In this document: piece after piece, positions 23,956-63,279 of the stretch
How the letters are laid out: each line of letters begins with the position of its first letter
Numbering within the stretch: the first letter of the stretch is position 1
Notes under the pieces: model-generated
Seen by the model: the letters and a program-made list of their open reading frames with translations, nothing else
Told to the model about the DNA's origin: nothing
Databases searched by the model: none
IMG/VR virus record: IMGVR_UViG_3300046694_000136
Location: 124,001 to 188,000 of that record
Direction: 5' to 3' (one strand)
DNA length: 64,000 nucleotides
Translations under genes and position numbers: made by a program

Positions 23956-24516
23956 ATGGATCGCGCACTTCGCAACGTAAACGATGTGGCTGCCAATACA
24001 TCCAATAACCAATCGGGTTATCCCGAGTTGTCCAACGTCCAACTGGCTACTGAAGTCCAGAAGCTCAGCGGGTATAACCACTTCTCCAGTAGCACTGCTA
24101 GCTTGCTGGAAGAGGTGGTGCGTCGCCTGGTATGTAGTCAAGGTACCGTGATCAACCTTTCGGGAACTCCCAGTTCCTCCAGTTCTCTGGATCCGTTAGA
24201 CCAACCGGTGACCTTTGGTTCCACCCTCACCTTGAGGGATCTATCGGAAGCCACGTACACGGTTACCTTGGATCCACGTAAACACCTTAAGAAGTCTGAC
24301 TACCCCAGCCTGGCAAAACAGTTAAACAAGCAAGGACTTACTGATGATCTCGCAGAGCTTGCTTTGAGTGATTTGAAGAAATGCTACAACGTTACCGCTA
24401 TCGCCAAACAAGCGCCGGCTAGTTTCGATGTAATGTTTTATTGGTTGCAGAGCGGGGTTATGTACTGGACCTGGTGTGACGCTAAGGATCCAAAGAATAC
24501 CGCTGCTGATATTTAA
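23956..24516 (+). CDS. Hypothetical early protein with the shared N-terminal helical module
   Basis: ATG 23956 with GAGGA RBS. Confidence 0.75.
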   Translation: MDRALRNVNDVAANTSNNQSGYPELSNVQLATEVQKLSGYNHFSSSTASLLEEVVRRLVCSQGTVINLSGTPSSSSSLDPLDQPVTFGSTLTLRDLSEATYTVTLDPRKHLKKSDYPSLAKQLNKQGLTDDLAELALSDLKKCYNVTAIAKQAPASFDVMFYWLQSGVMYWTWCDAKDPKNTAADI

Positions 24517-24544
24517 GTTGCAGAATCCTTCAGATCTATATAAC
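24515..24544 (+). promoter_or_regulatory. Extended early promoter AAGTTGCAGA-N10-TCTATATAAC
   Basis: Nearly identical element with the same spacing at 61861-61890. Confidence 0.7.
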
Positions 24545-24605
24545 TAGGGTGAATATAAACGTGGTAGTTTTGCTACGTTCACCTTTATTGTACTGTAGGA
24601 GCTTT

Positions 24606-24950
24606 ATGATGACTAACCTTAACCTCACCCCAGAACAAATCAAAACTGTATCGATCCGTGGTCAACGCGAAGCCGGCTTCAAATCCTCCCACATCGTTGG
24701 TGCTGTTGCAGGTGTTCTCACTGCCGCCGCCAACTACAACCAAGGTAGCTCCCTCGCAGGCGCTGCCGCTGGTGCTGCACTGGGCGGCGCCATGGGTTAC
24801 GCCATCGGCGACATCTTCGGCATCACCGACGATCTGGGTACCAGTGCTCGCATCCTCAACGGCGGCGTAGCAACTCTGGTGGGTGTATCGTTCAGCGGTC
24901 TCGCGACTGGTCTGGTCGATGCACTGGTACGTCCACAAGAAGCACAGTAA
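24606..24950 (+). CDS. Small glycine-zipper membrane protein
   Basis: AGGAG RBS; three Gly/Ala-rich hydrophobic helices with GxxxG repeats; homologous to the C-terminal part of 61954..63279. Confidence 0.75.
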   Translation: MMTNLNLTPEQIKTVSIRGQREAGFKSSHIVGAVAGVLTAAANYNQGSSLAGAAAGAALGGAMGYAIGDIFGITDDLGTSARILNGGVATLVGVSFSGLATGLVDALVRPQEAQ

Positions 24951-24957
24951 ATGACAA

Positions 24958-24979
24958 TAGGGGGTCTTCGGACCCCCTA
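24958..24979 (+). terminator. UUCG-loop terminator
   Basis: TAGGGGGTC-TTCG-GACCCCCTA followed by CGGTTATGTTTT. Confidence 0.85.
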
Positions 24980-25048
24980 CGGTTATGTTTTATTTTTCAC
25001 CGTAATACCAATCACTCGAGCTACATTCTTAATTACGTAACTGAGGTA

Positions 25049-26014
25049 ATGACAATGCGCAATGAATTCGGACACATGCACGCCGCCCAATACATCCAAC
25101 CTGGTTATCAGGATGCGTTCAAAAGACTCAGCGATGAACAGTTGCTGGAGCAGCTGAAGTCCATGGCGTGTTACGGGGATCACAACCAAACCACCCTGAT
25201 GTTGATCGGGGAGCTTTACCAGCGCGCTCAGCGTGCTTTCGGTAAGACCTTCATGCCGAGTGAAAAGGTCCATGGCGATCGTTACCTGTACACCTCGATC
25301 TACAAGGATGGGGTAATGACCCATTACTTTGTGGACGATCATGAAACCAAGTTGCTGGTAGACGGTGTCTTCGAACGTACAGAGTTCCTGTACACAGCCG
25401 AGGGGCTGGGCTTCGAAGGGGGTCCTCGCATTAGCGCCTTGCTGGATCTTGGCGAGGTGTTCACAGCGATTCGGGTTGACGAGAACGGCAAGCAGGTTGG
25501 CGAAGCGGTACGTTGCCACTTCGGCACCATTGCAGCTGCTCAAGGGTTCAACGCTAACCCGTTGCACATCTCGAAAACTCTCCCTCTGGGGATCTTCGAG
25601 ATCAACTTCAAATCACCCGCCGGACTCATGCGTCAGACCCTCAACGAAGCTCTGCTGAAAGCGGCCGAGACGGTTACGACCGATCCAGAGAAGCTTACAC
25701 GAATTCAGGAATTTGTGAATCAGTTCGATCTCTTGGAAGAGTACAGGATCTCGGTTGAAAAGGTGTTCAATGGATCGGAGATGGCCGGTGGGATGAACCT
25801 TATCCCTATCACCACTCAGATTCATGTGTTCCCGGCTGGTACCGGCGCGCCTGTCAAGTTCTTGACTGCGATGTATGGTGAAACAGTTCCCGGGTTCGTT
25901 GACCGGAACAAATACCCTGCGTTGTTCCTCAACCCAGAACCTAACGCCAACCATTATGCTCCTGGTGCGGGCGGCTTTGGCGGTCCAGGTGGTCCAGGTA
26001 CCCCTATCTGGTAA
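25049..26014 (+). CDS. Hypothetical early protein (shared N-terminal module; Gly/Pro tail)
   Basis: GAGGT RBS; a promoter-like GCTACATTCT lies at 25020. Confidence 0.75.
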   Translation: MTMRNEFGHMHAAQYIQPGYQDAFKRLSDEQLLEQLKSMACYGDHNQTTLMLIGELYQRAQRAFGKTFMPSEKVHGDRYLYTSIYKDGVMTHYFVDDHETKLLVDGVFERTEFLYTAEGLGFEGGPRISALLDLGEVFTAIRVDENGKQVGEAVRCHFGTIAAAQGFNANPLHISKTLPLGIFEINFKSPAGLMRQTLNEALLKAAETVTTDPEKLTRIQEFVNQFDLLEEYRISVEKVFNGSEMAGGMNLIPITTQIHVFPAGTGAPVKFLTAMYGETVPGFVDRNKYPALFLNPEPNANHYAPGAGGFGGPGGPGTPIW

Positions 26015-26028
26015 GTAGTCTGATAGTC

Positions 26029-26050
26029 GAGAGGAGCTAACCCTCCTCTC
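26029..26050 (+). terminator. Terminator
   Basis: GAGAGGAG-ctaacc-CTCCTCTC plus a T tract. Confidence 0.75.
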
Positions 26051-26078
26051 CTTTCTTTATTCTTGTTATGAGGTTTTT

Positions 26079-26870
26079 ATGAACAACGGTCAAGGCAGTA
26101 TCTTCGGCGGGGCTCTTCACGGCATGCCTCAAACACAGCTCGAGTTCAACAAGCACTTTAACCCAGCTCCTCCGGAGGTGGTCATCCAGACCCTGCACGA
26201 GATGGCTAATTGGGTCCCTATGACCAATCAGACCCTCTCGGTTATTCAGAATGCTGTAGGGTTGATCTCCCGACTCCAGCAAGATAACAAGGCAATGTCT
26301 GACGATAAGTACTGGAAGCTTCGTAAGTTCGGTGAGGAGATGCTTGCTCTAATTTCCATCCCGGCTGACGCGGGTCGTGAAAAGCGAGTGTTCTTCCACG
26401 ATTTTGAGACCGGTGAAGTCTACCTGGGGTTCCCTGCCGTTATGGGCAAAGACATCCCGCCCATCGTAATGAAGGCAACACTGGGAGTGGAAGCAGTTGT
26501 AACCCTGTCCCTTAACGAAGCCGTCGAGGCAACCAAGAAGATCTGCAATACCTTTGAATCCTGGGTATACGGGACGGGCCGCTTGGGGCTCAATGAAGAA
26601 GTCCCGCTTAACCCATTGTCCGGAGAAACTGAGTTGGATTGGGAGTTCACCATGGACCTCGGTGACAGCCTGTTCGAGAATGATTTCAAGGCCAGCTTCA
26701 TCTTTCTCGGAGAGCAAGCCCATATCGTAAGGCCGGACTTGGAATACGATACGTTCAAGGACAAGTTCAACCTTTGCGCTATCCTGAACGGTCCTAACCG
26801 ATCGGTAATGCGTCTCCGGGTGTTCTCGATCAACCAGCAGCAGTACTACGAATGGGTATTCCCTAAGTAG
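26079..26870 (+). CDS. Hypothetical protein (shared N-terminal module)
   Basis: GAGGT RBS; 263 aa. Confidence 0.75.
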   Translation: MNNGQGSIFGGALHGMPQTQLEFNKHFNPAPPEVVIQTLHEMANWVPMTNQTLSVIQNAVGLISRLQQDNKAMSDDKYWKLRKFGEEMLALISIPADAGREKRVFFHDFETGEVYLGFPAVMGKDIPPIVMKATLGVEAVVTLSLNEAVEATKKICNTFESWVYGTGRLGLNEEVPLNPLSGETELDWEFTMDLGDSLFENDFKASFIFLGEQAHIVRPDLEYDTFKDKFNLCAILNGPNRSVMRLRVFSINQQQYYEWVFPK

Positions 26871-26880
26871 TTGTTACGAG

Positions 26881-26902
26881 GAGGGGTGTTAGTTCACCCC
26901 TC
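26881..26902 (+). terminator. Terminator
   Basis: GAGGGGTG-ttagtt-CACCCCTC followed by TTTTATTTTTT. Confidence 0.85.
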
Positions 26903-26935
26903 TTTTATTTTTTGTACCTCATGGAGTTTGTCAAG

Positions 26936-27241: not shown

Positions 27242-27300
27242 ATAAACACTCCACCTAAATCCTATGCACGTTCATATAACCGAACTCTATGGAGTCTCCA

Positions 27301-27957: not shown

Positions 27958-27976
27958 CGCGCGTACATAGTCATAG

Positions 27977-28007
27977 CCTACCCTCAGCCCTAAGGGCTGA
28001 GGGTAGG
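27977..28007. terminator. Bidirectional terminator
   Basis: CCTACCCTCAGCCC-taa-GGGCTGAGGGTAGG between convergent genes. Confidence 0.85.
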
Positions 28008-28031
28008 TACTATGGTTTTTTTTTGCTTCTG

Positions 28032-39259: not shown

Positions 39260-42200
39260 ATGCAGACTCCAATTGTCAGACAGTTCCGGGATGACATTCT
39301 TCACACCAATCCCGAGAACCAGATCCGAGGGGAACCGTTTACTACGGAAACCCCCGGAGAGTACACCCGCATCATTGTTCCTCTTAAGTCCCCGTTCTTC
39401 ATCAAAAGTCTGAAGCTGTACTTCAAGAACGGGGAACCAATGACTGAGGAGCATTGGGAGATCTATCGGATCATGCCTAAGTTGACTAGCCTTGCTGCTC
39501 AAGGTGTCGCGTGCATGATTCGTTTGAAAGACCCTACCATCGTGGAAGGGTTCTTGGATTACGACGTAGTGGGCGAGTTCACGTTGTTTGATACAGGCAT
39601 GATGAGCCTGATCTTCACAGCGACTGAAGATGACCGGATGATCGATTTCTTTAACCTGAAGAACCGTCCGATCGTTTACCCGCCAACGATGCACCATCAC
39701 TCGCTGCTTTATGACTACATGGCGTTTGAGGATACCATCCACCTGTTAAACTCGATCAGTACCTACGCCGACCAGCTGGGTACCCCGTTGATCGAAATCA
39801 AGATCTCGCAGTACTTCTCGAACTTCAACCATTACTTGGCGCTATATAAAGCTGAGTTGTTCAAGTTCCTCAACGATCACAAAGCGACCTACAACCACCA
39901 CGGCATCAAAGCCATTCAGGTGGGTTTGGAAAAGGTAGACAACTTTGAGACGGCGGTGAAGCCGATTGATCTGTTGAGTGGTCGGGATGACATGCACCTG
40001 ACTGTTCAGGGGTTGGCAACTATTGTTAACCAGACAGGCTTTGATTCCGGTGAGTATCTGGGTAAGGGCACTCTGCCTATCTCTCAGTACGGCAACACCA
40101 ACTTCATTCCACCAGACATCGACGGTTCCTTTGAAGGGCTCGGTGGCGTGTATGAAGCGGCAGGTATGTGTCAAGAGACTGACGGTTCGGTACTGTATCT
40201 GCAAAACCGGATGGACGGTCGTGTACGGGGCTTGTACTTCTCCACCTTGAAGGGTGCTGTACCTGGCTCAGGTGCGCTGGATTACACCTTCAGTAACTTC
40301 CGTTACACTCACCCTCGTTTTGTTGTTGACGGGGCTACAGTGGACCGGATTGCTCAAGGTAGCGGTAACGAAGTGATCTTGGTAGGGGACAGTATCAACA
40401 ACCTCTACTACATAGGACTGACCAACGGTTCGTTTGACCCTGCTAAGCACGTTTACTCCCGGATCGATTTGTCGCCTCTGCTGGCCGCTATCTACAGCAA
40501 CCCCAACAGATCGGCTAACCCGATTATGCGTAACATCAACATCGCTCGGATAGGGTCTTGGATCTACCTGTTCCTAGGTGCGTCTGTACCCGACCCAGTC
40601 TCGGATCCATCGCAGCTGATCTCTCTGCGCTACAAACACATCTTCCGTGTGAACGTAGCTGACGTAGCGGCCACTATTCCAGTGACCCCTGTTCGTCAAT
40701 GGATTACTTACATGGATGCCGATGGTGCACAGTGGAACGGAAGTTACTACTGGCGCTGGCACGATGAGATCAAAGACGGGAACGGTAACTTTCTGAAAGC
40801 GTTGTTCAGCTTCCAGCAACCATTGAACCCGTTTGCGTACATCGGTATCTCTTCGGTGATGACCTTGGCGGAACAGGACCCTAACCGACCTGGGATCTAC
40901 GCCTTGAAGTTTGTGGGCGGTTACTTCGCTTCGTTCTTCTCGGAACAGTTCAACGCTAGTTTCAACTATGCCCCGGAAATCACGTACGACTTCAACCCTG
41001 CTACGGGGGTAATGACTCGGACTAACCTTTCCAACCTCCCAGTGATCAACTTTGGTGCGAATCCTGTAATCCCTGCCGGGTATACCCAAAACATGGCAAT
41101 GATTAAAATGGTCCGCTACTTTGAAGGTCAGGGGATGGAGGTATTGGAGACTGGACGCATCCTCTCGTCAGCTGCGGCTGGTGCGTTCGGTTATCCTCGT
41201 CTGGCTGGTGTCCTAACTCCACCTAATGCGCCGACTCGTTACAACACCATCGCGCGTTTGTGGGGGACTGCTCAGGGCTGGGCGTACACCGATCTTTTAC
41301 CAGAAAAGGTGCAGCAGCCATTGGCATCAGGTGGTTATGTGCGGTGCGTGTTGTACAAGCCAGGGGCGGAGATGTACATCGCCTCTAAACCTGAAAATCC
41401 TAACCAGCTTCAGCTGTACTACCGTGCTGTCTCGGGTGGTTATGCTATTCGTGATGGGGTTAACAACATCTACGTTGGGGGTATGTATTCCCGTCCGCTC
41501 GCCTCCATTGTGAGAAAGGTCAACGCTCCGTTTGGTTTGGGGGCAATGACTGTATCGGTTCCGGGTAGTCAGGTGGGCGCTTACGGGGTTGAGATTGGGC
41601 ACTCTGCTTTCTGTATGGGAGTTCAAAAGAAATACTTCAACCGGGAGATGGAAGGTAACGCGTGGGTTGGGGGTGTAGCTGCTGACGACATCATCATGAT
41701 GGCCAGTAACAGTGAACGTCTGGAAGCTGACGGGTCGATCACTTTGGTACCGGGTGTGGAGATCATGTACCCTGCTTGGATTGTTGAGTCTTTGAAAGCT
41801 CAGGTCCAGCACCCCGATATCAAGAACCGTGGTCGTGCTTGTTTTGTGACGATCTGTGATCCGACGTTCTCGTCTGGAGCATTCGGCTGGCTGCCGATCA
41901 CTGTGGTAGTTAGTTACCTCGACACTTATGGTCTCCCTAATACGGATACTGTGTACACCACCTGCATGACCATTAACGCCTCTTACTCGGCGTCTGGTAA
42001 CAGACAAGTGGTGACTGGTGTGAGTGTGATCGACATTATCCACGCCGAAAAGCCATCCGCTTCTTATCAAGGCGCCATTCCAGTTGTCTATGGCTCGGAT
42101 CCTGCGAATGAGGGTGCGCAAACCACGCTGGGCTCAATGCGGACGTACTACTACCTGAATGGGAATAGTCTAGAAGTCTATTTCTCGGCAGGTGTCCGTA

Positions 42201-42823
42201 GCCTTGGGATGTTCGCTCACCAGATGAGCAACTACCACTTTGGCTATAACAACCGGGACACTCGTCGCTGGAGTTGGGCGCAGATGGAGGATGACGGGGC
42301 TAACCTTGGCGCATTATCGGTTACCCCGGATAACGGGATTGCTCGGGCTTATGCGTGGAAAGACGTCAGTGGTGGTGCCGCTACTATCATCAACGGTCCG
42401 GCGTATAAAGCGCTTCTGGGTTCTAGTTATCAGTCGTTAGGTTGGGGGGTATACTTCCGTGCGACTACCATCGCAGTGTTCAACGGGAAACAGTACTCTT
42501 ATCCACCGGGGATGATTGACCTTCGTGACATTGATCCCTCTCCTGGTAACAAGATCTTCTACGTCTACGCAGCACTCCGCAACGAGCTGCCGGTCTATGA
42601 GGTGACACAGGAGAAGCGCCTGGAATCCGCGTTCCAAGTTTGGGTAGCGAAGATCACCACCAACGACAGGCAAGTCCTGCAAATTGAACGGTTTAATGTC
42701 TTTACCATTAACGGTAGCCGCATTTCTGAAATTAAACGAGGGAACAGTATTCCTGCATCTTCTGGGTTGGTCAACGTAGAAGGTCAGATCCCTTGGTTGC
42801 GTTCTGATGAAATGCTGTCATAA
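39260..42823 (+). CDS. Long tail fibre / receptor-binding protein, paralogue 1 (phiKZ gp145/146-like)
   Basis: HHG.KAIQVGLEKVDNF fibre motif, GSFEGLG block and C-terminal IDLRDIDP domain. Confidence 0.7.
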   Translation: MQTPIVRQFRDDILHTNPENQIRGEPFTTETPGEYTRIIVPLKSPFFIKSLKLYFKNGEPMTEEHWEIYRIMPKLTSLAAQGVACMIRLKDPTIVEGFLDYDVVGEFTLFDTGMMSLIFTATEDDRMIDFFNLKNRPIVYPPTMHHHSLLYDYMAFEDTIHLLNSISTYADQLGTPLIEIKISQYFSNFNHYLALYKAELFKFLNDHKATYNHHGIKAIQVGLEKVDNFETAVKPIDLLSGRDDMHLTVQGLATIVNQTGFDSGEYLGKGTLPISQYGNTNFIPPDIDGSFEGLGGVYEAAGMCQETDGSVLYLQNRMDGRVRGLYFSTLKGAVPGSGALDYTFSNFRYTHPRFVVDGATVDRIAQGSGNEVILVGDSINNLYYIGLTNGSFDPAKHVYSRIDLSPLLAAIYSNPNRSANPIMRNINIARIGSWIYLFLGASVPDPVSDPSQLISLRYKHIFRVNVADVAATIPVTPVRQWITYMDADGAQWNGSYYWRWHDEIKDGNGNFLKALFSFQQPLNPFAYIGISSVMTLAEQDPNRPGIYALKFVGGYFASFFSEQFNASFNYAPEITYDFNPATGVMTRTNLSNLPVINFGANPVIPAGYTQNMAMIKMVRYFEGQGMEVLETGRILSSAAAGAFGYPRLAGVLTPPNAPTRYNTIARLWGTAQGWAYTDLLPEKVQQPLASGGYVRCVLYKPGAEMYIASKPENPNQLQLYYRAVSGGYAIRDGVNNIYVGGMYSRPLASIVRKVNAPFGLGAMTVSVPGSQVGAYGVEIGHSAFCMGVQKKYFNREMEGNAWVGGVAADDIIMMASNSERLEADGSITLVPGVEIMYPAWIVESLKAQVQHPDIKNRGRACFVTICDPTFSSGAFGWLPITVVVSYLDTYGLPNTDTVYTTCMTINASYSASGNRQVVTGVSVIDIIHAEKPSASYQGAIPVVYGSDPANEGAQTTLGSMRTYYYLNGNSLEVYFSAGVRSLGMFAHQMSNYHFGYNNRDTRRWSWAQMEDDGANLGALSVTPDNGIARAYAWKDVSGGAATIINGPAYKALLGSSYQSLGWGVYFRATTIAVFNGKQYSYPPGMIDLRDIDPSPGNKIFYVYAALRNELPVYEVTQEKRLESAFQVWVAKITTNDRQVLQIERFNVFTINGSRISEIKRGNSIPASSGLVNVEGQIPWLRSDEMLS

Positions 42824-42876: not shown

Positions 42877-45800
42877 ATGGACAAGCTTCAAGTTCAAGCG
42901 GTTCAGTTCGACGTACGTGGTACTCGTGTAGAAAACCGGGTACTCCGGGAAAAGATCCCGATTAAGTTCAAAGATTGTCCGTGGGTTGTTCCTAATGGTT
43001 CGCCATACTTCGCTGAAGACGCTCTGGTGGACATGTTTAACGAAGCCGGTGGTCGACTGACCCTTGGCACTGATTACTGGTTTGAAGGGGAGTTCGTGCC
43101 CTTCTGCGAGATTACCGGACGATCCATTTGCTCGTTCGTTAAGTTGTCGGATAAAGTACTGGCGGAGAACGAATTCGTTCAGATGACTTATCAAAGCATC
43201 GGGGCTTGGTTTGTTCCGCGCAACAGTATCGATGAATGGATCAAAGAGATCTACATCGGCAAGATCCCAATCCCTTGGGCTAAAGTTTATAACGTTCCAG
43301 CAACCCTTCCTCCCAGCATGCACTCGCACTCCATTAAAACGGAAGTGGGTGACTGGTATGAATTGACTTTCTTCTTCGACTATCTCGCGAACTACTACAG
43401 TACCCGGGATCCGAACGTCTACATCGAGGCTGACCGCGTTATCGCTGAAAGCTTTGCTCGACTGAAGCAAGTAAAGGAAGAACAGCTGGCCCGACTGGTT
43501 AACCACAGTAAGGACTACGGTAACCCTCACGGTATCGACAAGATCCGGTTGCAACTGGGTAACCTTGACAACTTCCGTACTGCATTGCCGGACGAAGACG
43601 TACAGGGCGTAGCGGCTAACCTGTTCAGTACACCTGAAGGGGTCATGCGTCTCTCGGAAGAGTACTCGCTGGAAAGCGATGCGATCATGCGTAACGGTGT
43701 GTTGCCGGTGAGCTACTTCGGTAACGGGGGGTACATTCCTCCAACTATCCTGGGTTCCTTTGAAGGCCTGGGTAGTCTCTCCGAATGCATGGGGATCTGT
43801 GTTGAAGCTAACGGTCGTACCGTCCTGATCCAGAACCACTTCGATGGTCGTACTGAAGGTCTGTACTTCTCGATCCTGAGTGACTACAAGAACCCTCTGG
43901 ATATCAAGAACCCGTACCGTTTCGATTACACCGCTTATCGCTATGAACCACCGGTACTGATCAACAACGGTGTTAAGCCTAACCACATCGTCGCTGGTAG
44001 TGGTAACGAGATCATCATGGTAGGTCTTACCACCAAAGGTAACCCTGCTGCGAATGACCGTTGGTACATTGCGTTGACTAACGATAGCTTTGACCCTAGT
44101 GGTCATCGTTATATTCAAGTCAACATGGCCCCGATCTTTGCTCAGTGCGGTAACCCGGACAGTGAAGGTTACTGGAACGGTTATCTGTACCACGGTCGGT
44201 GGATGATCTACTTGTTGGATCAGTACGCTTACTTGGCGGTTGAATCGGCAATGTCCCCAGACAAGTTCAACCAACAAGGTCGGATGAGTTACTGGCGTAT
44301 CCCTCGTCAAGCAATGATTGACGGGACTCCTGCAACGTGGGAGCTGGTTCGCTTAACGTATCAGGACTGGGATGGCGTACAGTACAACAGTGCTAACTAC
44401 TGGGAGTTCGCCCAAAAACAGCTGAACGGTGGTAACCTCGCTAAGTGGGGACGCTATAACTGGACTACCATCCAGCCTCCACCGGGCATTGGGACCATGA
44501 CTCGGCGTATCTACAGCCTTTTCGCCAAGAAGCCGGGTACGACCAACATCTTCTACCTGAACTGGATCAGTTACACGTTCTTGGATTATCAGGTTCCTGG
44601 TCGAAGCGCAAACTTGTCGGCGTCCATTACCAACATGGTGTATGAGTTCAACATCGTGACGGGCGTGATGACACTGTTGTACAAACAACCTCCGCTCAAC
44701 ATTGACTACCAGAACGACAACAGCGCGATAGTGTTTCAGGATCGCGACATCTGGTTACAGTGGTACAACGCACTGGTGCGCTACATTACACCAGCGGTAG
44801 TCATCACTCCTAATGGTGAACGTCTGGCGTCGATTACCGGTAGCGGTCAGGAGCAGACAGTACTCAACTCGGTGATTGAATATACTCGGTTTGCGTACAT
44901 CAGCAATAACCAGACTGTTACTAGTCGGGCTGACTTGTTGAAGGGGAGCGTGGGCAGAGACCGTATTAAGCAATCCGCTGTTTGGGAACGTGGTCGTAAC
45001 TTGCTGACCCCTATTGCTACGGGTATCGGTAACCGCCAACTGGCATACGAGGCACAGGGTGAGAACTTCCTGACTTACCCAACCACCTTTGATCCATCTA
45101 AAGGAGCACCGTTGCCTAAAGTAGTGTGCCGGAACATCTCGGGTGATTATGCGGTACGTCCAGAGGTTACCAACCGGACGCTGGCTCCTCTGTACAGCAG
45201 ACCGTTGACTAACTCAGTCTTCGACACCAACATGACTTATGCTGATGGCGCTGTCTCGATTACTGGTCCTGCTGATGAACTGGCAGCGCGAGGGGTTGAG
45301 ATGGGGACGATGGGTCTGAGTTACTGTGGGTGGTCTGCTCGACACGACAATTATCCGACCATGCTGGAAATGCCTACCAAGGGTTCTCCGATGCGAGCAC
45401 CTCAGGAGGCGGGGGCTTTCATTAGTTTCCCTAAAACCTACCAGCGGGTGTTGGACGTAGGTGCTCAAAAGGTAAACTACGTTCCAAATGATTATTACGG
45501 GTTGTCGGTATCGGGACGTAACAAGATTCGTTCTTTGATTCCAGCTGGGCAACAGGGTCCATGGTGGTGTTTTGAGTTAGCGATGCTGACCGCTGAACAA
45601 GGCGGTATGTTTGGTGGTTTGGCAACTGCCTTGATTAAACTCAAGTACCCTACCGCGGCAGATGGTAGTTTGGCGACGTGGGATGGCCAAGTCTTCTTGG
45701 TAGCTCCTGTGGTGGAAGCCCCTAACGCTAACCACCCAGGCCTGTACTTGATCACCGACTTCCAGATATTGGGGTCCTCGGTCAAGAACGTTCCACACGA

Positions 45801-46602
45801 GTACATGTACTCCAGTAACCAAGGCGCGCTTGCCTATTACTGGAACCGTCCTCTGCTGAGTATCTACCGTTCCGGGAACATCTTGCAGTGTATCTGGACC
45901 TCCGGGTTCAACTACATCAGCGGCAGTATCTACATTGACCAAACCATCTTCACGGTCAATCTGGGTAACGGAGTGTTTAACGGAGCAGGGACTACCTTCC
46001 TTGGCTGGAACGCTGCGGAGTACGTGGTTAACATTCCACGGGCTGGCCGTAGTCGGATTGGGGTCTCAAACCCTGATACCTATCAAGCGAAGATGATTGA
46101 CTTTGCTACTCCTGCTCAGACCAACGACACCTCTGGTGGTGCTGCTCGTATCTACCCAGTGGTAAATGGGGGTGGTGGGGTTGACTACTACGCGACGGTT
46201 ACCAGTTATCCAGAGACAGGTTGGGCGGTGTTCTTCCTCGAAGAAGTAGCGGTGATGGTGCAGGGTACTTTGTACCGGGCTACGACGGGTACAGTTGACC
46301 TCCGTGATATCGATACTGATCCACGGAACAAAGTGTTCTACGTTTACATCACCATTGAGGATACTGTGGCGAAGTACATCTTCTCTACAGTGAAACTGCG
46401 TCGGGGTAATGCGGTTATGTTGGTGGCGATCATTACCACTAACGAGAAGCAGATCCTCACGTTGGAACGCCGCACTCCGTTTATTGTGGCGGACTACGAG
46501 CTGAGCTTTGTACGGGATGGCGGTATTATCCCAATCAGTTCCGGGTTCCCTCAGGACAACGGTGTCTTCAAGTTCCTGAAGCAGAGTGAGCTGTTGCCTT
46601 AA
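42877..46602 (+). CDS. Long tail fibre / receptor-binding protein, paralogue 2
   Basis: NPHGIDK..LQLGNLDNF, GSFEGLG and VDLRDIDT blocks, colinear with paralogue 1. Confidence 0.7.
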   Translation: MDKLQVQAVQFDVRGTRVENRVLREKIPIKFKDCPWVVPNGSPYFAEDALVDMFNEAGGRLTLGTDYWFEGEFVPFCEITGRSICSFVKLSDKVLAENEFVQMTYQSIGAWFVPRNSIDEWIKEIYIGKIPIPWAKVYNVPATLPPSMHSHSIKTEVGDWYELTFFFDYLANYYSTRDPNVYIEADRVIAESFARLKQVKEEQLARLVNHSKDYGNPHGIDKIRLQLGNLDNFRTALPDEDVQGVAANLFSTPEGVMRLSEEYSLESDAIMRNGVLPVSYFGNGGYIPPTILGSFEGLGSLSECMGICVEANGRTVLIQNHFDGRTEGLYFSILSDYKNPLDIKNPYRFDYTAYRYEPPVLINNGVKPNHIVAGSGNEIIMVGLTTKGNPAANDRWYIALTNDSFDPSGHRYIQVNMAPIFAQCGNPDSEGYWNGYLYHGRWMIYLLDQYAYLAVESAMSPDKFNQQGRMSYWRIPRQAMIDGTPATWELVRLTYQDWDGVQYNSANYWEFAQKQLNGGNLAKWGRYNWTTIQPPPGIGTMTRRIYSLFAKKPGTTNIFYLNWISYTFLDYQVPGRSANLSASITNMVYEFNIVTGVMTLLYKQPPLNIDYQNDNSAIVFQDRDIWLQWYNALVRYITPAVVITPNGERLASITGSGQEQTVLNSVIEYTRFAYISNNQTVTSRADLLKGSVGRDRIKQSAVWERGRNLLTPIATGIGNRQLAYEAQGENFLTYPTTFDPSKGAPLPKVVCRNISGDYAVRPEVTNRTLAPLYSRPLTNSVFDTNMTYADGAVSITGPADELAARGVEMGTMGLSYCGWSARHDNYPTMLEMPTKGSPMRAPQEAGAFISFPKTYQRVLDVGAQKVNYVPNDYYGLSVSGRNKIRSLIPAGQQGPWWCFELAMLTAEQGGMFGGLATALIKLKYPTAADGSLATWDGQVFLVAPVVEAPNANHPGLYLITDFQILGSSVKNVPHEYMYSSNQGALAYYWNRPLLSIYRSGNILQCIWTSGFNYISGSIYIDQTIFTVNLGNGVFNGAGTTFLGWNAAEYVVNIPRAGRSRIGVSNPDTYQAKMIDFATPAQTNDTSGGAARIYPVVNGGGGVDYYATVTSYPETGWAVFFLEEVAVMVQGTLYRATTGTVDLRDIDTDPRNKVFYVYITIEDTVAKYIFSTVKLRRGNAVMLVAIITTNEKQILTLERRTPFIVADYELSFVRDGGIIPISSGFPQDNGVFKFLKQSELLP

Positions 46603-46649
46603 ATGAAATAGGGGGAGGGTTTCCTCCCCTTTACCGATTGGAGCTGTCT

Positions 46650-49541
46650 ATGATTATTTTTGGTGGAGAACCGCCATTTGTCGAGAAGCCGGAACCACGG
46701 TTCGGGGAAGTAATCCTCCGACTCGACCAGATGGCCTATGCGGTAGAGAAGAAGGTTGCTAGCTTCAACGAAGGTACTAAAGAAGCTCTGATCCTGTTCA
46801 GTCAGAACATGGCACAGTTTGTTGCTGAAGTAACTCCGGTAATCGACGCTCACTTGGCTCAGCAAGGTGCGGTGCATGGTGAAACCAAAGCCAGTATCGG
46901 ATTGGGTAACAAGGATAATTACCGGACGGCCACTCTGGCTGAACAACGAGCACTGACTCCGGTATTGGCTTACGTAACTCCTCAAGGGGCCAAGCAAGCT
47001 TTCCTGGACCGCAACGCCTCCAACCCTTTGGTAGGTGATGCTTACCAGCAGAACAACGTGTTGCAGTTCGCCTCGTACTTCTACACGAACGAATTCCCAG
47101 TGATGACCCCGACCGTTGCTCAGTCGAGTCGTTATTTTGATTCCAATGCCAAAGTGGCGATGGTCTTTAACGATGACCGGATTGTTTACTCTCCGTCTTC
47201 CAACAAGGCCGTCTACCAAACCGATGTTGGGTTTATCAGTGCCCCTACCAAAGCCCGTAAGGCGTCGCGGTTGGCTGAGATCCCTAACCTGCAAAGCCGG
47301 ATGCTGCCGGGTGGCTGGAACAACATTGGCGCAGTAACGTCTGATGGTAACGTTGCATTGTTCAAACCATTGGCTGACAAGAAGATCTTTGTTTATAAAG
47401 ACAACTTGGGCGATCCAGCCGGGGCTAAGAACTTCCTGTTATTCAGCAGTTACATCGGGACAGCATATCGTGGGTTGTCGGTGTTCCCTCAGCTCACAGG
47501 TGACTACACGTTCAATCTCCTCCACAAGTTCTTCAAGGTGGATGCGTTTGAGAGCGACCCTACACTGAATCAGTTGGTGACCGCGGCTTACCCTGCTCTG
47601 TTCACGTTGATGGGCGCTGCACCGTATCAGGCGCCTATCCAGGGCGGCCACACAGTAGACGTTCGTAACTTCGTCACGCTGAGTGCTGGTCAAACCGTCA
47701 AGATCGGTGTAGAGAACGGTTCCCCTCAAATCAACGTTGGTTTGTACTGGTCGGCTCGTGACTATGAGATCCGGATGTTCGTGGCTGTACCGCTGGTGGT
47801 CACTGGTAACGGGATCACTAAGTACTTGGCATTGAACTATGTGACATCGTTCATTCCGGGTACGTTGATGGCTGGTGGGTCGGGTACTGTTACGGTAATG
47901 GGGACTCGTGTTCCTGATACCCTCAACGCAGGAACCTTGGCTCCAACCAATGGCTCGCAGTACCTGTTCGCTCGTGATCCGTTTAACTTCAACGATCCTT
48001 CAGTACTTCCGGGGGTAGTCTTGTCGTCGGGTGACGTAGTCCGGTCTATCTCAACTAAGAACGGTATTCGTGTAAAACGTTTCCGCTCTGGTTTGGCTGG
48101 CTTCCCGGGTTGGATTGCGGGGCCTCGTCCGTATGCGGATCCTAAGCTCCTGCGGACTGAGCTGTACACACCTTCGAGACACAGTCCATTTGGACCAGTC
48201 CCCGATCGCATTATTCCTTTCACTAACCTTAATGAAACACGGTATCTGGTTTATGGGCTTGACAACGGGACAGGTCTCTTCCGGTGGGCGGAGATTACGT
48301 GGAATTCCGAAAGCATTGTTGGAAGCGTCGCTGGTGCACGGATTGGGGTTCGGGCTCCATCAAGTTTCACCTCTTACTCAAAGATTGACAACTTCCCTAA
48401 AGGCCTCTCGGTTATTGCCAATAAGGTCAGCAGTGGTGTTGGGATTAATTCTCTTGTCTTCACAGCCCAAAATGGTTTCAAAGCCAATGCATCGTTTGGG
48501 TACGCCAACGGAGTCGTCACACTGGGAGCAGAAGTAACACTTGCTCTCACTACGGTGAACCGCTTGAAGGCATCGGGTAAGAAGGTACTGGATAACGCAG
48601 CTGTCTTTAACGCCGGGATTCCTGACTCTGCTCGTGAAACCATGATCCATGTTTATGCGATCACTCTGAACAAAGCCGTGGTGGTTATCTCTGATGGCTA
48701 CAGTTACGCTGAAGGTGGTGCATTCTCCTACAACGTAGCAGCAGGTCAACTCAACCTGATCCTTCCGGGTAGTGCGGATCTGCCATTGCAACGGCTCACA
48801 CCAAGCAGCAGTGCCCTGACCGGTCTCAACCGGGTCTCTAAATCGGGTGATGTTGTCTGGAGTACACCAAGTGACATGTTGGCTTCTCAACTGGATGCGG
48901 CGACTTACGACATCGTTATCACCCGACCTTTCGGGGAAGTGTACGGTGACTTGTCGTTCCGTCTGTCCGGGATGACTTCTGACTCACCGACGTGTTCTCC
49001 GTTTGCAGTGAACCCGGCTCGGTTGTATCAGGGTCAATTGATCATTGATGCGGTGGACGAGTTGCATCCTCCTATCTTGATTCCTAAGAAGGGGCTGTAT
49101 CAGGTATCCCCCGGCAATGCTTCTGCTACGTCGACTATCATGGCTGATGTGAGTGGGAACACGACACTGGATGCTTACGAGGTTAACGAAGCTGGTTGGG
49201 TTCGTATCCCTGGTGGTTCTAAGGTGGTAATCGACGGTACGGTGTATCTTCTGGACCGGGAGTATTCGGTCAAGGTGAGAGCTGTGGGTACGTCGTACTG
49301 CTACCTGCGTCGGGCTAACAACGTCTTGGTGGCTATTGCTTCTGATGTAATGCGAGAAGTGAGCAACACCGAGGTGATGTTCGGTACTGCGGTAAACGGT
49401 ATCCTCACTGTTAACGAATCGTACATCGTGATGAACAAGCACGTACTCCGTACAGGGCGTCGTGGTTCGGCTATCCCAGTGTTCGAGGATGATGGTGTAG
49501 CGGGAACTAACAAGTTCTTCACCCGTCGAGATGTGAGCTAA
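46650..49541 (+). CDS. Tail fibre-associated protein, paralogue 3
   Basis: ATG 46650 after GGAG; VHGETKASIGLGNKDNY motif; related C-terminus (RRGSAIP). Confidence 0.65.
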   Translation: MIIFGGEPPFVEKPEPRFGEVILRLDQMAYAVEKKVASFNEGTKEALILFSQNMAQFVAEVTPVIDAHLAQQGAVHGETKASIGLGNKDNYRTATLAEQRALTPVLAYVTPQGAKQAFLDRNASNPLVGDAYQQNNVLQFASYFYTNEFPVMTPTVAQSSRYFDSNAKVAMVFNDDRIVYSPSSNKAVYQTDVGFISAPTKARKASRLAEIPNLQSRMLPGGWNNIGAVTSDGNVALFKPLADKKIFVYKDNLGDPAGAKNFLLFSSYIGTAYRGLSVFPQLTGDYTFNLLHKFFKVDAFESDPTLNQLVTAAYPALFTLMGAAPYQAPIQGGHTVDVRNFVTLSAGQTVKIGVENGSPQINVGLYWSARDYEIRMFVAVPLVVTGNGITKYLALNYVTSFIPGTLMAGGSGTVTVMGTRVPDTLNAGTLAPTNGSQYLFARDPFNFNDPSVLPGVVLSSGDVVRSISTKNGIRVKRFRSGLAGFPGWIAGPRPYADPKLLRTELYTPSRHSPFGPVPDRIIPFTNLNETRYLVYGLDNGTGLFRWAEITWNSESIVGSVAGARIGVRAPSSFTSYSKIDNFPKGLSVIANKVSSGVGINSLVFTAQNGFKANASFGYANGVVTLGAEVTLALTTVNRLKASGKKVLDNAAVFNAGIPDSARETMIHVYAITLNKAVVVISDGYSYAEGGAFSYNVAAGQLNLILPGSADLPLQRLTPSSSALTGLNRVSKSGDVVWSTPSDMLASQLDAATYDIVITRPFGEVYGDLSFRLSGMTSDSPTCSPFAVNPARLYQGQLIIDAVDELHPPILIPKKGLYQVSPGNASATSTIMADVSGNTTLDAYEVNEAGWVRIPGGSKVVIDGTVYLLDREYSVKVRAVGTSYCYLRRANNVLVAIASDVMREVSNTEVMFGTAVNGILTVNESYIVMNKHVLRTGRRGSAIPVFEDDGVAGTNKFFTRRDVS

Positions 49542-59344: not shown

Positions 59345-59357
59345 ACTCGAGGTATAA

Positions 59358-59849: not shown

Positions 59850-59880
59850 GCCCCTCTTTAATTGGATTAGGAGAAAAAGG

Positions 59881-60303
59881 ATGGATGGTACAGCTGTAGT
59901 AGAGGGCAACGCCAAAGTACAAGCGCTTTTTGAAGAGATCATGGGCATCGACAATAAGCGTAAGCACATCACCATACGCAACAAGTACGCAGTAGGGATA
60001 GTCCGGAAATTTCGAGAGATCTTCATTTACGATTATGATCGCTCGAGCCGCCCGTTGGTCAAGGTTAAGAAAGCCGGTCAGACTGTATTGTTACGGTTAG
60101 GGTTCGGGATCGACGAAACACTGGAGCTCCTGGAGAACCTACTGCGTATCATGCAAGCGTTTGGTACCCCTAAGGAAGAACCGATTGTACATCTTCCCAA
60201 GCCTATCCCTGTTGACGATCCTCGTAGTACCGTGGGGATCAACGAGGCCGGGAAGATCATCATGCACAGCATTACCGCTATTAAAAGACCGATTGCTCAA
60301 TAG
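59881..60303 (+). CDS. Hypothetical protein
   Basis: AGGAG RBS. Confidence 0.7.
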   Translation: MDGTAVVEGNAKVQALFEEIMGIDNKRKHITIRNKYAVGIVRKFREIFIYDYDRSSRPLVKVKKAGQTVLLRLGFGIDETLELLENLLRIMQAFGTPKEEPIVHLPKPIPVDDPRSTVGINEAGKIIMHSITAIKRPIAQ

Positions 60304-60329
60304 AACAACGAGAAGAATAAGGATTTTCC

Positions 60330-60614
60330 ATGTATTACTTTTTTAAGCATAACGGGGTATGGCGGTACAAGTACCCAGGGGATTTAAACGCTAAAACGAT
60401 TGACACCTTTGCGTTAGAGCGCGTATTGGGTGTGATGGGTGGTCCTGAAGTTATCGTGGTAAGAGCGCAACCTGATGGCAACGTTTATCATATTAACGTT
60501 AAGCACGGCTTCATCGACAAAGTTGAGCACGCGGATACTACAGTTGGTCCGTTGGCTGACGGCACAAACTACATTGAAGTAACTGAATTCCACGCTAAGG
60601 AAATTACCCTATGA
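60330..60614 (+). CDS. Hypothetical protein
   Basis: AAGGA RBS. Confidence 0.65.
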   Translation: MYYFFKHNGVWRYKYPGDLNAKTIDTFALERVLGVMGGPEVIVVRAQPDGNVYHINVKHGFIDKVEHADTTVGPLADGTNYIEVTEFHAKEITL

Positions 60615-61339
60615 CTGTTCCAGCGACTCTTCCGCTTTCTTTGCACCATGTCGACTCCTCTTGGGTTAATCAGCGTGCTAAAGAGCTGAGTGACACCCGT
60701 GGTCATAAACGTCCTGATGTTAAGGGCGCGTTGACTGAGATTGCCGACAAGTTTGTTGATGAGGTTGGTGATAACCTCGACGAATCCCGCGACTTGGCTG
60801 TATACCAGCCCTCCGGGGATACTGACCCGTACATCATTGCAGTTCCGATCAAAGATGCCGTGGTCGCTGTTGTAGAAGCTCCTGTGCCGGTTTCTATTCC
60901 AGTCGGTGGTGTGTACCGTCCACACGAAGTTCCTGAGACCATCCAGGAAGACTTCGAGAACTTCCTTTTCGAAACCGAAACGGGTGCAACTCCTGCTGAA
61001 CTGGAGAAGGACTCTACCGGACGCTATACCCACAAGAACATTCGACTGATGTGGTACGGGTTCAACCTCTACCACCAGAAGATGACCATGGCTCGCCGTG
61101 CAGAGTTCCGTGCTGCGTACCACAAGGCTCTGGGTAGCTACATCGTCGGTAAGGTGTACGAGAACGGTGCAACTGTCTTCACCAAGGTTCCTGTGCGCTA
61201 CCGTAATAAGGCGCAGGCACTGGAAGAGGCAAACCGTCTTCTGGAAGAACAAGGCGAGGCGTGGGCCGTGTGGCGCTGCATCGACATCTTCGGTAAGTTC
61301 GATGTTCGTGTTCCTGAAGAGGACGCTCCTCAAGAGTAA
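60611..61339 (+). CDS. Hypothetical protein
   Basis: AAGGA RBS; coupled to the upstream gene. Confidence 0.7.
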   Translation: MTVPATLPLSLHHVDSSWVNQRAKELSDTRGHKRPDVKGALTEIADKFVDEVGDNLDESRDLAVYQPSGDTDPYIIAVPIKDAVVAVVEAPVPVSIPVGGVYRPHEVPETIQEDFENFLFETETGATPAELEKDSTGRYTHKNIRLMWYGFNLYHQKMTMARRAEFRAAYHKALGSYIVGKVYENGATVFTKVPVRYRNKAQALEEANRLLEEQGEAWAVWRCIDIFGKFDVRVPEEDAPQE

Positions 61340-61376
61340 AGGATTTTATAGATTCTTAACTCGTCCGGGAACTGAA

Positions 61377-61805
61377 ATGGCCAGTAACGCAGGTTATGTC
61401 CAAGTCCTGTTGCAAGAACCAGAGCGAAGCGAAATCCTAGGGTTGTTGGTTCAGGCTAGTATTGAAATGCCCAAGTACCCTCTTCATTGCACTGTTATGT
61501 ATGACGAGCGCGATCTGGATGTTCCATTGTGCACTGTGAACCCCAATAAGGTTTACGAGGCCACTATCCAGAATGTTGAGGTGTTGGGTGACGGACTGGT
61601 GTTCCATTTGATCTCACCGAGTTTGGTGGAGGAACACTTGCGGTTGAAAGACCGAGGTTACCAATCTTCCTTCGCTGCTTATCTTCCTCATATGTCCATG
61701 ACGTATAAGTTCGATAAGTACGATACCCTTAAAGCAGACTTCTTGTTTGCTAACTGGGCAGGGCGTAAAGTTACCTTCAGTGAAGAGCAGTTTGGTGATA
61801 AATAG
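61377..61805 (+). CDS. acb1: 2H phosphoesterase, Acb1 (anti-CBASS nuclease, T4 gp57B)-like
   Basis: 142 aa from ATG 61377 with two HxT/S motifs (LHCTVMY, YLPHMSMTY), with size and spacing like Acb1. Confidence 0.75.
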   Translation: MASNAGYVQVLLQEPERSEILGLLVQASIEMPKYPLHCTVMYDERDLDVPLCTVNPNKVYEATIQNVEVLGDGLVFHLISPSLVEEHLRLKDRGYQSSFAAYLPHMSMTYKFDKYDTLKADFLFANWAGRKVTFSEEQFGDK

Positions 61806-61811
61806 GCAATA

Positions 61812-61837
61812 CCTGCCCAGTCCTAGGACTGGGCAGG
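61812..61837 (+). terminator. Palindromic terminator
   Basis: CCTGCCCAGTCCTAGGACTGGGCAGG followed by ..TATTATGCATTTT. Confidence 0.85.
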
Positions 61838-61860
61838 GTCTATTATGCATTTTATTTTTT

Positions 61861-61890
61861 AAGTTGCAGATTTACTCATGTCTATATTAC
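61861..61890 (+). promoter_or_regulatory. Extended early promoter AAGTTGCAGA-N10-TCTATATTAC
   Basis: Contains an exact TATATTAC; twin of 24515-24544. Confidence 0.75.
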
Positions 61891-61953
61891 TCGTGTGAAT
61901 AAACAACGCAATGTTTTAAACTCATTGTCTGTTAACTGTACTTGGAGAACGTT

Positions 61954-63279
61954 ATGACTACTACCAAACCGCAAATCGTTTTCGCTGATTCCCTGGAAGT
62001 TGTTAAAGAGCGCATCAAGGCCCTTCAGGCTGAGAAAACTCCTCGCAACGAAATCCTGATCCAACTGAACAAACTGATTCACGATGCCGAGCTGTTCTCC
62101 CAGAAACAACGGGCGAACGTGGTTCGTGAACTCAACAAAGACTTCGGTCTGAAAGTCAGCATGAGTGAAATCAAGCGGGCTATCAAAACCGTGAACACTG
62201 CGACGAAGCCTAACGAAAAGGCTACGCCGGTGGATGGTCTGGGCGGCAACGCTACTCTGGACCTGGCTGCAAAACCTCCTGTGGCGCCGGCAGCTGAAGA
62301 AGCTGCTGATGTAACTGCGGCTGCCGCTAAACCCGCCGCTGGCAAGGACACCGCCAGCAACAAACCTTCCACCACCACTACTTCGGAAAACACCACCATG
62401 GCCCCTGTAAAAGAAACCCTGAAACTCGTATCCGATCGCATCGCCGTTGACGCTCCTCGTTCCCACGAAGAAAAGGTCGGCGACCTGCTCGCCATCCTGG
62501 CCGGTGCCGGTGCTACCACTGAAGAAGCTCGCCAAGAGCTGATCAATGGTTTCATCGCTGCCAACCCGGCAATGAGCATCACCTGGAACCTGATGAAGAA
62601 CTACCCGCAAGGCGAAGCAGGCATCGTCGGCACTCTGGTTGCCTACATGGAAATCGATCCGGAAAACAAAGCCAAGTTCGAAGCCTACCTGGCCCCGATT
62701 GCTGGTGTTGACCAACCTGCTCCTCCTGCCGCTCCGGTTGCTGATCTCGGTACCGTCACCGCTGCCGCTGCTGTGGCCGCCAGTGCACCTGCCGCTCCTG
62801 CTCCTGGCATTCCTGGTGCCCCTGAAGTTTCGGTTGCTGTTGCGGTCGAAGCTCCTGGTCTGAAAGAACGCGTCATGACCACCATCCGCGGCAATCGCGA
62901 AACCGGCTTCTCCAGCGGCGTCGTGGCAGCAACTACCGCACTGGTCGGTGGCGGTCTGGAAATGGCATTCAAAGGCAACGCTACCATCGGTTCCGGCGTC
63001 GGCACTGCTGTAGGTGCTACTGGCGCTTACTTCCTGGCCGAGTCCACTGACAAGCTGATGGACAGCGAAACCGGTCGTTACCTGCTGGCTGGTGCTATCG
63101 GCGTCGTTGCTGGTGGTCTGGGTAGCCGTATCGGTCGCGGTGTGCAAGACGGTTACCTGAACCCGTCGTCTGAAGTTGCCGGCGCTCTGGAGACCCTTCC
63201 AGGCGCTCCGGTACCTGCTCCACAACCAGGCGGTCTGGTAGGTAACTCCGAAGCACTGCTGGGCATGTTCAATCTGTAA
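61954..63279 (+). CDS. Highly expressed early protein with Ala/Pro linkers and a C-terminal glycine-zipper membrane domain
   Basis: ATG 61954 after GGAG; strong codon bias; 'IRGNRETGF' plus GxxxG helices. Confidence 0.8.
   Translation: MTTTKPQIVFADSLEVVKERIKALQAEKTPRNEILIQLNKLIHDAELFSQKQRANVVRELNKDFGLKVSMSEIKRAIKTVNTATKPNEKATPVDGLGGNATLDLAAKPPVAPAAEEAADVTAAAAKPAAGKDTASNKPSTTTTSENTTMAPVKETLKLVSDRIAVDAPRSHEEKVGDLLAILAGAGATTEEARQELINGFIAANPAMSITWNLMKNYPQGEAGIVGTLVAYMEIDPENKAKFEAYLAPIAGVDQPAPPAAPVADLGTVTAAAAVAASAPAAPAPGIPGAPEVSVAVAVEAPGLKERVMTTIRGNRETGFSSGVVAATTALVGGGLEMAFKGNATIGSGVGTAVGATGAYFLAESTDKLMDSETGRYLLAGAIGVVAGGLGSRIGRGVQDGYLNPSSEVAGALETLPGAPVPAPQPGGLVGNSEALLGMFNL

Follow-up and report, generated by a model that had tools for sequence, protein, structure and literature searches.

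Two genes in a 64,000-nucleotide stretch of virus DNA are the subject of this analysis. The stretch (hereafter the window) comprises bases 124001-188000 of the 234,503-bp IMG/VR record IMGVR_UViG_3300046694_000136 (called G000 below), which has direct terminal repeats and is rated complete; positions are those of the window unless marked as genome positions. A short gene at 24606-24950 and a long gene at 61954-63279 encode proteins that are homologous over a glycine-zipper module, which is nearly the whole of the short protein and a C-terminal domain of the long one. Their promoters are of one class and closely alike, their codon usage resembles that of the major capsid gene, and both genes are conserved in related phages. 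We put at about even the chance that they are early, abundantly made paralogs whose glycine-zipper module is embedded in a membrane, with the long form serving as a tether or scaffold.

The source genome encodes both the chimallin nuclear-shell protein and the PhuZ tubulin, and is thus that of a nucleus-forming jumbo phage (chimallivirus). Its relatives include Pseudomonas phage EL and Erwinia phage RisingSun, whose major capsid proteins share 55-56% identity with its own (742 aa), and a sequencing-run search found near-identical DNA in rhizosphere metagenomes. The comparison took in three more metagenomic genomes, complete or near-complete and 227-238 kb long (G001, G002 and G003); all six genomes (G000, these three, EL and RisingSun) encode chimallin, with 44-86% identity.

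Homology of the two proteins is found by several routes. BLASTP aligns residues 10-110 of the short protein with residues 305-404 of the long one (27% identity, composition-adjusted E 1e-4), and hhalign comparison of the short-family and long-family alignments gives a probability of 91% (E 9e-7). Against a 30-sequence alignment of the domain, the short family again scores 91% (E 1.1e-6), over 82 columns that run across all three helices of the module. When its own genome is searched, a domain profile built from long forms only finds the long gene (E 6.7e-68) and also the short gene (E 8.4e-5); reciprocally, a short-family profile matches the long genes of three related genomes (E 2e-4, 2e-3 and 0.026). 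The first-pass annotation, made from the DNA letters, had proposed that the product of the 24606 gene and the C-terminus of the 61954 gene are homologous, and these matches bear it out; the two proteins are paralogs with one domain in common.

Could the likeness be compositional, between unrelated Gly/Ala-rich low-complexity proteins whose similar promoters are a coincidence within a common class? The sequences are indeed of low complexity (about 54-55% G, A, S, T or V), their promoters are only the third most similar pair in the genome (see below), and filtered tblastn recovers nothing, EL included. Megablast and tblastn searches of phage records gave no match for either gene, but the protein tblastn miss is probably due to the low-complexity filter, since profiles do recover EL and RisingSun. 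Moreover, BLASTP still gives E 1e-4 after composition adjustment, the profile-profile probability of 91% extends over three helices in the same order with a common R-G-x-R-E-x-G-F lead-in, the reciprocal profile matches hold across four genomes, and G001, too, has the identical 13-nt upstream element at both of its genes. We give almost no credence to such an artefact, which the profile results exclude.

The second line of evidence is the control region. The first-pass annotation had noted a near-identical promoter at both genes, and this is confirmed: AAGTTGCAGA lies at 24515-24524 and 61861-61870, and TCTATAT[AT]AC at 24535-24544 and 61881-61890. The two-part motif AAGTTGCAGA-N10-TCTATAT[AT]AC occurs exactly twice in the whole genome and is absent from a reversed control. 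An iterated weight-matrix scan of the whole genome shows that it belongs to a larger set, with CTATATTAC-type cores at 26 sites, none of them on the minus strand, at distances of 13-396 nt 5′ of a gene start. The consensus of these sites is TtT.AaAc-CTAtATTAc-taG.gTGaAtaa, plus a T/A-rich TTTAA element further upstream; a TTAAGTT element at the same spacing is recognisable at about 8-10 of them. Seven of the 26 lie in the window, with core starts (early-promoter-like, from the weight-matrix scan) at the following positions:

10510, plus strand, core start
12775, plus strand, core start
17960, plus strand, core start
23885, plus strand, core start
24536, plus strand, core start (short gene)
53103, plus strand, core start
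61882, plus strand, core start (long gene)

One of the window sites is directly 3′ of the capsid gene, matching the position of a promoter annotated in EL. Among all 325 pairs of sites, the short/long pair is the third most similar (62% identity; mean 44%, standard deviation 7). The co-regulation claimed in the first-pass annotation thus stands in that the two control regions are alike and conserved, but the promoter marks out no private two-gene regulon; it is the best-matching version of a 26-site class.

We assign this class to the early promoters of jumbo phages. Early genes of jumbo phages that encode RNA polymerases of their own carry, near -10, an AT-rich and phage-specific motif of ~10 nt, which is attributed to the virion RNA polymerase (PMC7598289), and phiKZ early promoters have an extra T-rich element upstream of the core (PMC8244752). 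The sites described here are like the phiKZ-type promoters in having an AT-rich coding-strand core of ~10 nt before early operons and an upstream T-rich element, and they have the core AAACCTACATTAT in common with features called "putative phage promoter" in the EL record. The class is also internally consistent: sites lie 5′ of chimallin (genome 79886), which is an early gene (PMC12908238), and of PhuZ (genome 71504), and the genome-wide scan placed none 5′ of the capsid gene (genome 139583) or of the internal head protein gene (genome 124328), which has the highest codon adaptation index (CAI) in the genome. Given this likeness to published motifs and this consistency, the assignment seems well grounded. 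A sigma-70 scan called neither the short-gene nor the long-gene promoter.

The promoter type is thus known in general, and the extended form at these two genes, conserved across genera, is a refinement of it: compared with phiKZ-type promoters, their upstream element (TTTAAGTTGCAGA, identical over 13 nt) is unusually well defined. At the short gene it occupies 24512-24524 and is followed by the core CTATATAAC at 24536-24544 and a downstream box, GGGTGAATA, at 24547-24555; at the long gene the same upstream element (61858-61870) precedes the core CTATATTAC at 61882-61890 and the downstream box GTGTGAATA at 61893-61901. The short-gene promoter extends over the stop codon of the open reading frame (ORF; 23920-24516) that comes before it, and this ORF is itself preceded by an early-type promoter at 23885. 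The reading frames required no alternative genetic code. The elements of the two transcription units are as follows:

24512-24555, plus strand, early-type promoter of the short gene; same layout 5′ of the short orthologs in G001, G002, G003 and EL (gp82)
24558-24579, plus strand, hairpin of 9 bp that opens the predicted short-gene 5′ untranslated region (-14.6 kcal/mol, z -2.6)
24606-24950, plus strand, short glycine-zipper gene, 114 aa; AGGAG 6 nt 5′ of the ATG
24958-24979, plus strand, UUCG-loop hairpin 3′ of the short gene, 9 bp with 6 GC pairs; T-run displaced
61812-61837, plus strand, predicted hairpin terminator of the upstream Acb1-like gene; insulates the long-gene transcription unit
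61858-61901, plus strand, early-type promoter of the long gene, conserved 5′ of long orthologs
61954-63279, plus strand, long gene, 441 aa; GGAG 8 nt 5′ of the ATG; ortholog of EL gp127
63303-63322, plus strand, canonical intrinsic terminator 3′ of the long gene, UUCG loop and T-run

Genes and control regions are conserved together. G000, G001, G002, G003 and EL each have one short and one long gene. EL gp82 (118 aa) is the syntenic ortholog of the short gene (short profile E 8e-9), and EL gp127 (404 aa), which directly follows a 2H-phosphoesterase gene, is that of the long gene (domain profile E 4.7e-44); the long form of RisingSun is a 344-aa ORF at about 125.2-126.2 kb (domain profile E 8.4e-15). 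Short-family profile E-values range from 4e-50 (G001) to 8e-9 (EL), and the G002 long protein is 38% identical to that of G000. Synteny is kept as well, with the short gene placed after the capsid gene and the conserved block of three genes that comes next to the capsid gene, and the long gene after the 2H-phosphoesterase gene. Every short and long ortholog keeps the arrangement TTAAGTTnnAG-N~11-CTAnATnnn-nnGGGTGAATA, which for the long gene means the orthologs in G001, G002, G003, EL (gp127) and RisingSun and also a distant 593-aa member on a short contig. That the promoter is kept across genera while the proteins have diverged is our strongest evidence for a functional control region. The EL record has no promoter annotated 5′ of gp82 or gp127. 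In RisingSun the same layout also precedes gp87 (123 aa, Gly-rich), which occupies the position of the short gene and whose homology to it was not demonstrated (hhalign probability 2.5%). Most orthologs terminate at strong hairpins, often with UUCG loops.

Codon usage sets the two genes apart from most of the genome. With the major capsid gene as the CAI reference, the long gene scores 0.68 (rank 13) and the short gene 0.64 (rank 19) among 236 crude gene calls with a median of 0.41, so that both are in the top 8%; like the capsid gene, both avoid GGA/GGG, CTA/TTA/TTG and AGA/AGG. The bias resembling that of the major capsid protein (MCP) that the first-pass annotation saw is therefore real. 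Promoter-proximal genes as a group are not codon adapted (Mann-Whitney p 0.36), and an early promoter is combined with a top-8% CAI at only five of the 26 sites, namely those of chimallin (666 aa), PhuZ (321 aa), a 151-aa phrog_13587 protein and the short and long genes. The phrog_13587 protein lies outside the window at genome 45432-45887, is of unknown function and has no Pfam match.

UUCG-loop terminator hairpins are similarly rare, a strict scan finding only four in the whole genome, two of them at the short and long genes and one 3′ of chimallin. Both genes do end at such hairpins (24958-24979 and 63303-63322), again as the first-pass annotation had it, although the T-run of the short gene's hairpin is displaced by ~10 nt, which makes it a less canonical terminator than that of the long gene. 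The leaders are 70 and 72 nt long, and each starts with a predicted hairpin (24558-24579 and 61908-61928). Nearly all ortholog leaders have a hairpin ~10-15 nt 3′ of the GGGTGAATA box, with differing sequences and z values of -2.6 to +0.5; in the short orthologs the hairpins are in the same place, again with different sequences (z -0.7 to -2.1). The leader hairpin may be a 5′ stabilising stem-loop, a suggestion at most. Both genes are laid out as insulated single-gene cassettes. Together, the promoter class, leader, ribosome-binding site, codon bias and terminator predict early and abundant synthesis like that of chimallin and PhuZ; of the first-pass claim of abundant, very early expression, the promoter class and codon usage agree with "early" and "abundant", and the timing itself would follow from them.

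MCP-like codon usage might instead reflect late synthesis at structural level, the products being ejection or inner-body proteins that are packaged in the virion and enter the host envelope at injection. The short gene does sit among virion genes, residues 12-81 of its product weakly resemble the hydrophobic C-terminal part of the P22 ejection protein gp7 (PF25688, E 0.004), and structure comparison gives weak matches to phage ejection proteins (Z 5.7-6.0, within the noise band). Yet the gp7 match, at 17.4 bits, falls short of the cut-off of 28 and covers the low-complexity part only, and all such matches are below thresholds. The promoter class is that of chimallin and PhuZ, not of the capsid or internal head genes, which argues against a late virion gene; furthermore, EL gp82, EL gp127 and RisingSun gp87 are annotated "hypothetical" while their neighbours are annotated "virion structural protein". 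We regard an ejection role as improbable.

The module itself consists of the R-G-x-R-E-x-G-F lead-in (RGQREAGF in the short protein, RGNRETGF in the long one) and three Gly/Ala/Ser-rich helices with invariant Gly, Ala and Ser at zipper spacing. AlphaFold places the helices of the short protein at residues 9-45, 50-70 and 79-108. Charged residues make up only 2-7% of the three helices in 30 diverged sequences, long and stand-alone, at two conserved positions, and 0-0.4% in the 14 sequences of the short family; in the N-terminal and middle domains of the long family, 12-32% of helix residues are charged. The three uncharged segments of the module are 16-22 residues each, and the short protein has a charge-free stretch of 42 residues. 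No face of these helices tolerates charge, from which it follows that they lie in lipid or are wholly buried in an oligomer. The near-absence of charge thus argues for the lipid or buried environment that "membrane gene" in the first-pass annotation implied; the hydropathy is marginal for classical transmembrane helices, and the two are best called candidate membrane proteins.

Membrane helices of the glycine-zipper type are already known. The glycine-zipper membrane domains (PF13488, and "glycine zipper 2TM" proteins, among them phiKZ gp304) likewise have small-xxx-small runs, weakly hydrophobic helices and a charge-free helical hairpin. The present family differs from phiKZ gp304, which has an N-terminal signal sequence, in having no signal peptide, three helices and the R-G-x-R-E-x-G-F lead-in, and from known glycine-zipper domains in that most of its members carry a long N-terminal extension, which would be cytoplasmic if the module is a membrane anchor. 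The Pfam family Gly-zipper_Omp (PF13488) gives the short protein 15.3 bits against a cut-off of 25, below threshold, and matches only three of the 30 domain-family members (best E 0.007). This family therefore fails existing Pfam thresholds and seems to be previously undescribed.

Several results weigh against an early, membrane-embedded pair. Hydropathy is marginal, with best 19-residue Kyte-Doolittle means of 1.1-1.6 and Hessa-scale sums of +4 to +8 kcal/mol, so that insertion of the translocon type is not predicted. Basic residues that follow helix 3 in the long form clash with a simple three-span topology with the N-terminus inside. AlphaFold models the module with a predicted local distance difference test score (pLDDT) of only 35-50 in the long form and 70 in the short form (the mean for the whole short protein), and a complex prediction of the long-form module with the short protein scored 0.00, which is evidence neither way. 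Pfam and PHROG scans of both proteins gave no match above threshold; Foldseek of both models against the PDB gave no E-value better than 2 (best E > 2); a wide VIA structure search with the long model reached a best Z of 6.3, within the noise band for helical models; and the best row among PDB sequence profiles was a Gly-rich prion protein segment (E 0.07). Searches of phiKZ, 201phi2-1, SPN3US and FishSpeaker with the domain profile gave no convincing match, and the family, being absent from these phages, is not a component that all nucleus-forming phages need for their life cycle. Finally, the sequencing-run search returned zero RNA runs carrying the source genome; the four runs that were aligned are low-depth, DNA-like contigs of a 95-99% identical strain and are uninformative on expression.

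The same hydropathy and Hessa values, and the lack of a signal peptide, would suit a module that is a soluble homo- or hetero-oligomeric helical bundle with packed Gly/Ala faces, for example an accessory layer of the chimallin shell or an early scaffold. The expression signature is common to the soluble assembling proteins chimallin and PhuZ, and the conserved buried E and R of the GGxEM and GRY motifs could make an inter-helix salt bridge inside a protein core. Against this, a three-helix unit of 100 residues needs many copies to bury all its faces, none of which is charge-tolerant in the 30 sequences, and there is the likeness to membrane glycine zippers, weak though it is (Gly-zipper_Omp E 0.007-0.02, below threshold). 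A soluble bundle is in our view unlikely, while still to be reckoned with, and a membrane-embedded module is the reading followed below.

The long protein adds to the module a set of parts that can be given as follows (all on the plus strand):

61981-62202, plus strand, N-terminal four-helix domain, residues 10-83, AlphaFold pLDDT about 91
62407-62703, plus strand, middle six-helix domain, residues 152-250, pLDDT 81-90
62860-63189, plus strand, glycine-zipper domain at the C-terminus, residues 303-412, the part with homology to the short protein
63247-63276, plus strand, conserved hydrophobic C-terminal peptide (..ALLGMFNL) 3′ of a Pro-rich linker, from family alignments

From N- to C-terminus the order is N-terminal domain, disordered linker, middle domain, Ala/Pro-rich linker, glycine-zipper module and a short C-terminal helix. 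In the N-terminal domain L47, F48, R53, N61 and A76 are invariant in the family alignment. The first-pass annotation described the extension as a basic N-terminal domain on Ala/Pro linkers; folded parts on disordered Ala/Pro linkers are indeed present, but there are two helical domains, and over residues 1-100 the basic character is mild (17 K+R, 12 D+E). Two linker motifs, P-V-D-G-L-x-G (residues 92-104; 62227-62265) and, before the middle domain, T-Q-E-x-x-T-M (residues ~140-150; about 62370-62400), are kept even in the most distant long forms and may be docking peptides. The 95-99% identical strain has a 15-nt in-frame insertion at 62775, in the second (Ala/Pro) linker, which fits a spacer of variable length. 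The ALLGMFNL peptide is found in the long forms and in stand-alone forms of 113-145 aa and is absent from the short family of the window. The N-terminal domain has no fold match above noise and no usable match in the ESM Atlas, where the nearest clusters to the module are unnamed viral proteins of 129-148 aa; a word search with the N-terminal and middle domains alone returned the same family only.

The family as a whole is small. An exhaustive profile search of 1.84 billion representative proteins gave 65 clusters at E <= 1e-3, most of them proteins of 350-590 aa that carry the domain C-terminally and a few stand-alone (113-145 aa). The short protein has 13 metagenomic homolog clusters (66-95% identity) and the long protein 33. 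We considered phiKZ gp304 as a member and rejected it as a generic signal-peptide glycine-zipper protein of different layout. Vibrio phage pTD1 (AP017972.1) has adjacent Gly-rich ORFs of 140 and 156 aa at about 60.3-61.2 kb, ~2.7 kb 3′ of its homolog of the window gene at 20829-23144, which is the relative place of the short gene; they match the domain profile weakly (E 0.002; hhalign 40%). The RGxRExGF glycine-zipper family is narrow and viral, and it is unnamed in Pfam and PHROGs; the paralog pair would be specific to one nucleus-forming lineage made up of EL, RisingSun and this metagenomic clade. EL gp82, EL gp127 and the RisingSun orthologs are annotated "hypothetical protein", and literature searches found no paper on the EL and RisingSun orthologs or on glycine zippers of jumbo phages.

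We propose the following picture. Each gene would be its own compact transcription unit, with an early-type promoter that is presumably read by the injected virion RNA polymerase, a leader of 70-72 nt that probably opens with a hairpin, a good ribosome-binding site, adapted codons and a hairpin terminator. The module would most likely be a small membrane-embedded glycine-zipper bundle, alone or oligomeric. The short protein would be essentially the bare module; the long protein would use it as a C-terminal anchor, with two helical domains in the cytoplasm and short peptide motifs strung along flexible Ala/Pro linkers, a layout that looks like the architecture of a tether or scaffold. By analogy, flexible-linker membrane tethers such as ZipA and TonB also combine a hydrophobic anchor, a Pro/Ala-rich disordered linker and folded binding domains. 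Here the anchor is C-terminal and a three-helix glycine zipper, and there is no sequence or fold relationship to those proteins.

As early membrane proteins the pair could also be host inner-membrane effectors that act in superinfection exclusion, in depolarisation or as a small pore, the extra domains of the long form being regulatory. Small glycine-zipper proteins behind early promoters would fit, as would the stand-alone 113-145-aa forms of other phages, and glycine-zipper motifs are over-represented in channel-lining helices. Structural-level codon adaptation would be unusual for a catalytic or toxic effector, however, and the two conserved folded domains and linear motifs of the long form suggest binding partners; we rate effectors of this kind as unlikely. 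The roles in superinfection exclusion, as a pore and in vesicle tethering that the first-pass annotation entertained have no direct support.

What a tether might hold together can be put more boldly. Infection by nucleus-forming phages starts in a lipid vesicle, and the genome then moves into the protein shell; which phage proteins handle the vesicle membrane and how the genome is handed over from vesicle to nucleus are given as open questions in PMC12908238. The pair could be freshly synthesised early machinery that works on the membrane around this early phage infection (EPI) vesicle or on the inner membrane next to it, the short module inserting to loosen or open the lipid envelope and the long paralog, held in place by its own copy of the module, linking the vesicle through its two helical domains and peptide motifs to the nascent chimallin shell (or to PhuZ) for genome hand-over, in a form specific to EL- and RisingSun-like phages. 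We offer this as a long shot; if true, it would be a lineage-specific solution to genome hand-over. Apart from it, an early promoter with structural-level codon adaptation marks a small gene set that holds the known workhorses chimallin and PhuZ along with the glycine-zipper pair, and the pair supplies concrete candidates in cultured phages (EL gp82 and gp127 and the RisingSun orthologs). The analysis also defines a new domain family of about 65 sequence clusters and an extended, cross-genus early-promoter architecture that is useful for annotating this lineage.

Some observations on the surroundings of the two genes remain. The gene directly 5′ of the long gene (61377-61805, plus strand) encodes an Acb1-type 2H phosphoesterase that would counter the cyclic oligonucleotide-based antiphage signalling system (anti-CBASS; PF23474 at 41.6 bits, where the cut-off is 27). 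Two H-x-T/S motifs are present in it, and the corresponding EL gene, gp126, carries the label "RNA ligase"; Acb1 is also encoded two genes upstream of one distant long-form homolog (L045). In the gene after the long gene, the 95-99% identical strain has a diverged stretch of 309 nt at 63428-63738. Antisense to the long gene is a 447-aa open frame (61882-63225, minus strand), which we rejected as a gene because the coding-potential score favours the plus-strand gene and all homologs are on the plus strand; it is a by-product of codon usage and Ala/Gly composition. Between the short and long genes lie three consecutive, very large paralogous genes on the plus strand (39260-42823, 42877-46602 and 46638-49541; 1187, 1241 and 967 aa), which have an N-terminal match to the tail/virion-protein family phrog_2163 in common, and the first two of which also match phrog_3573.

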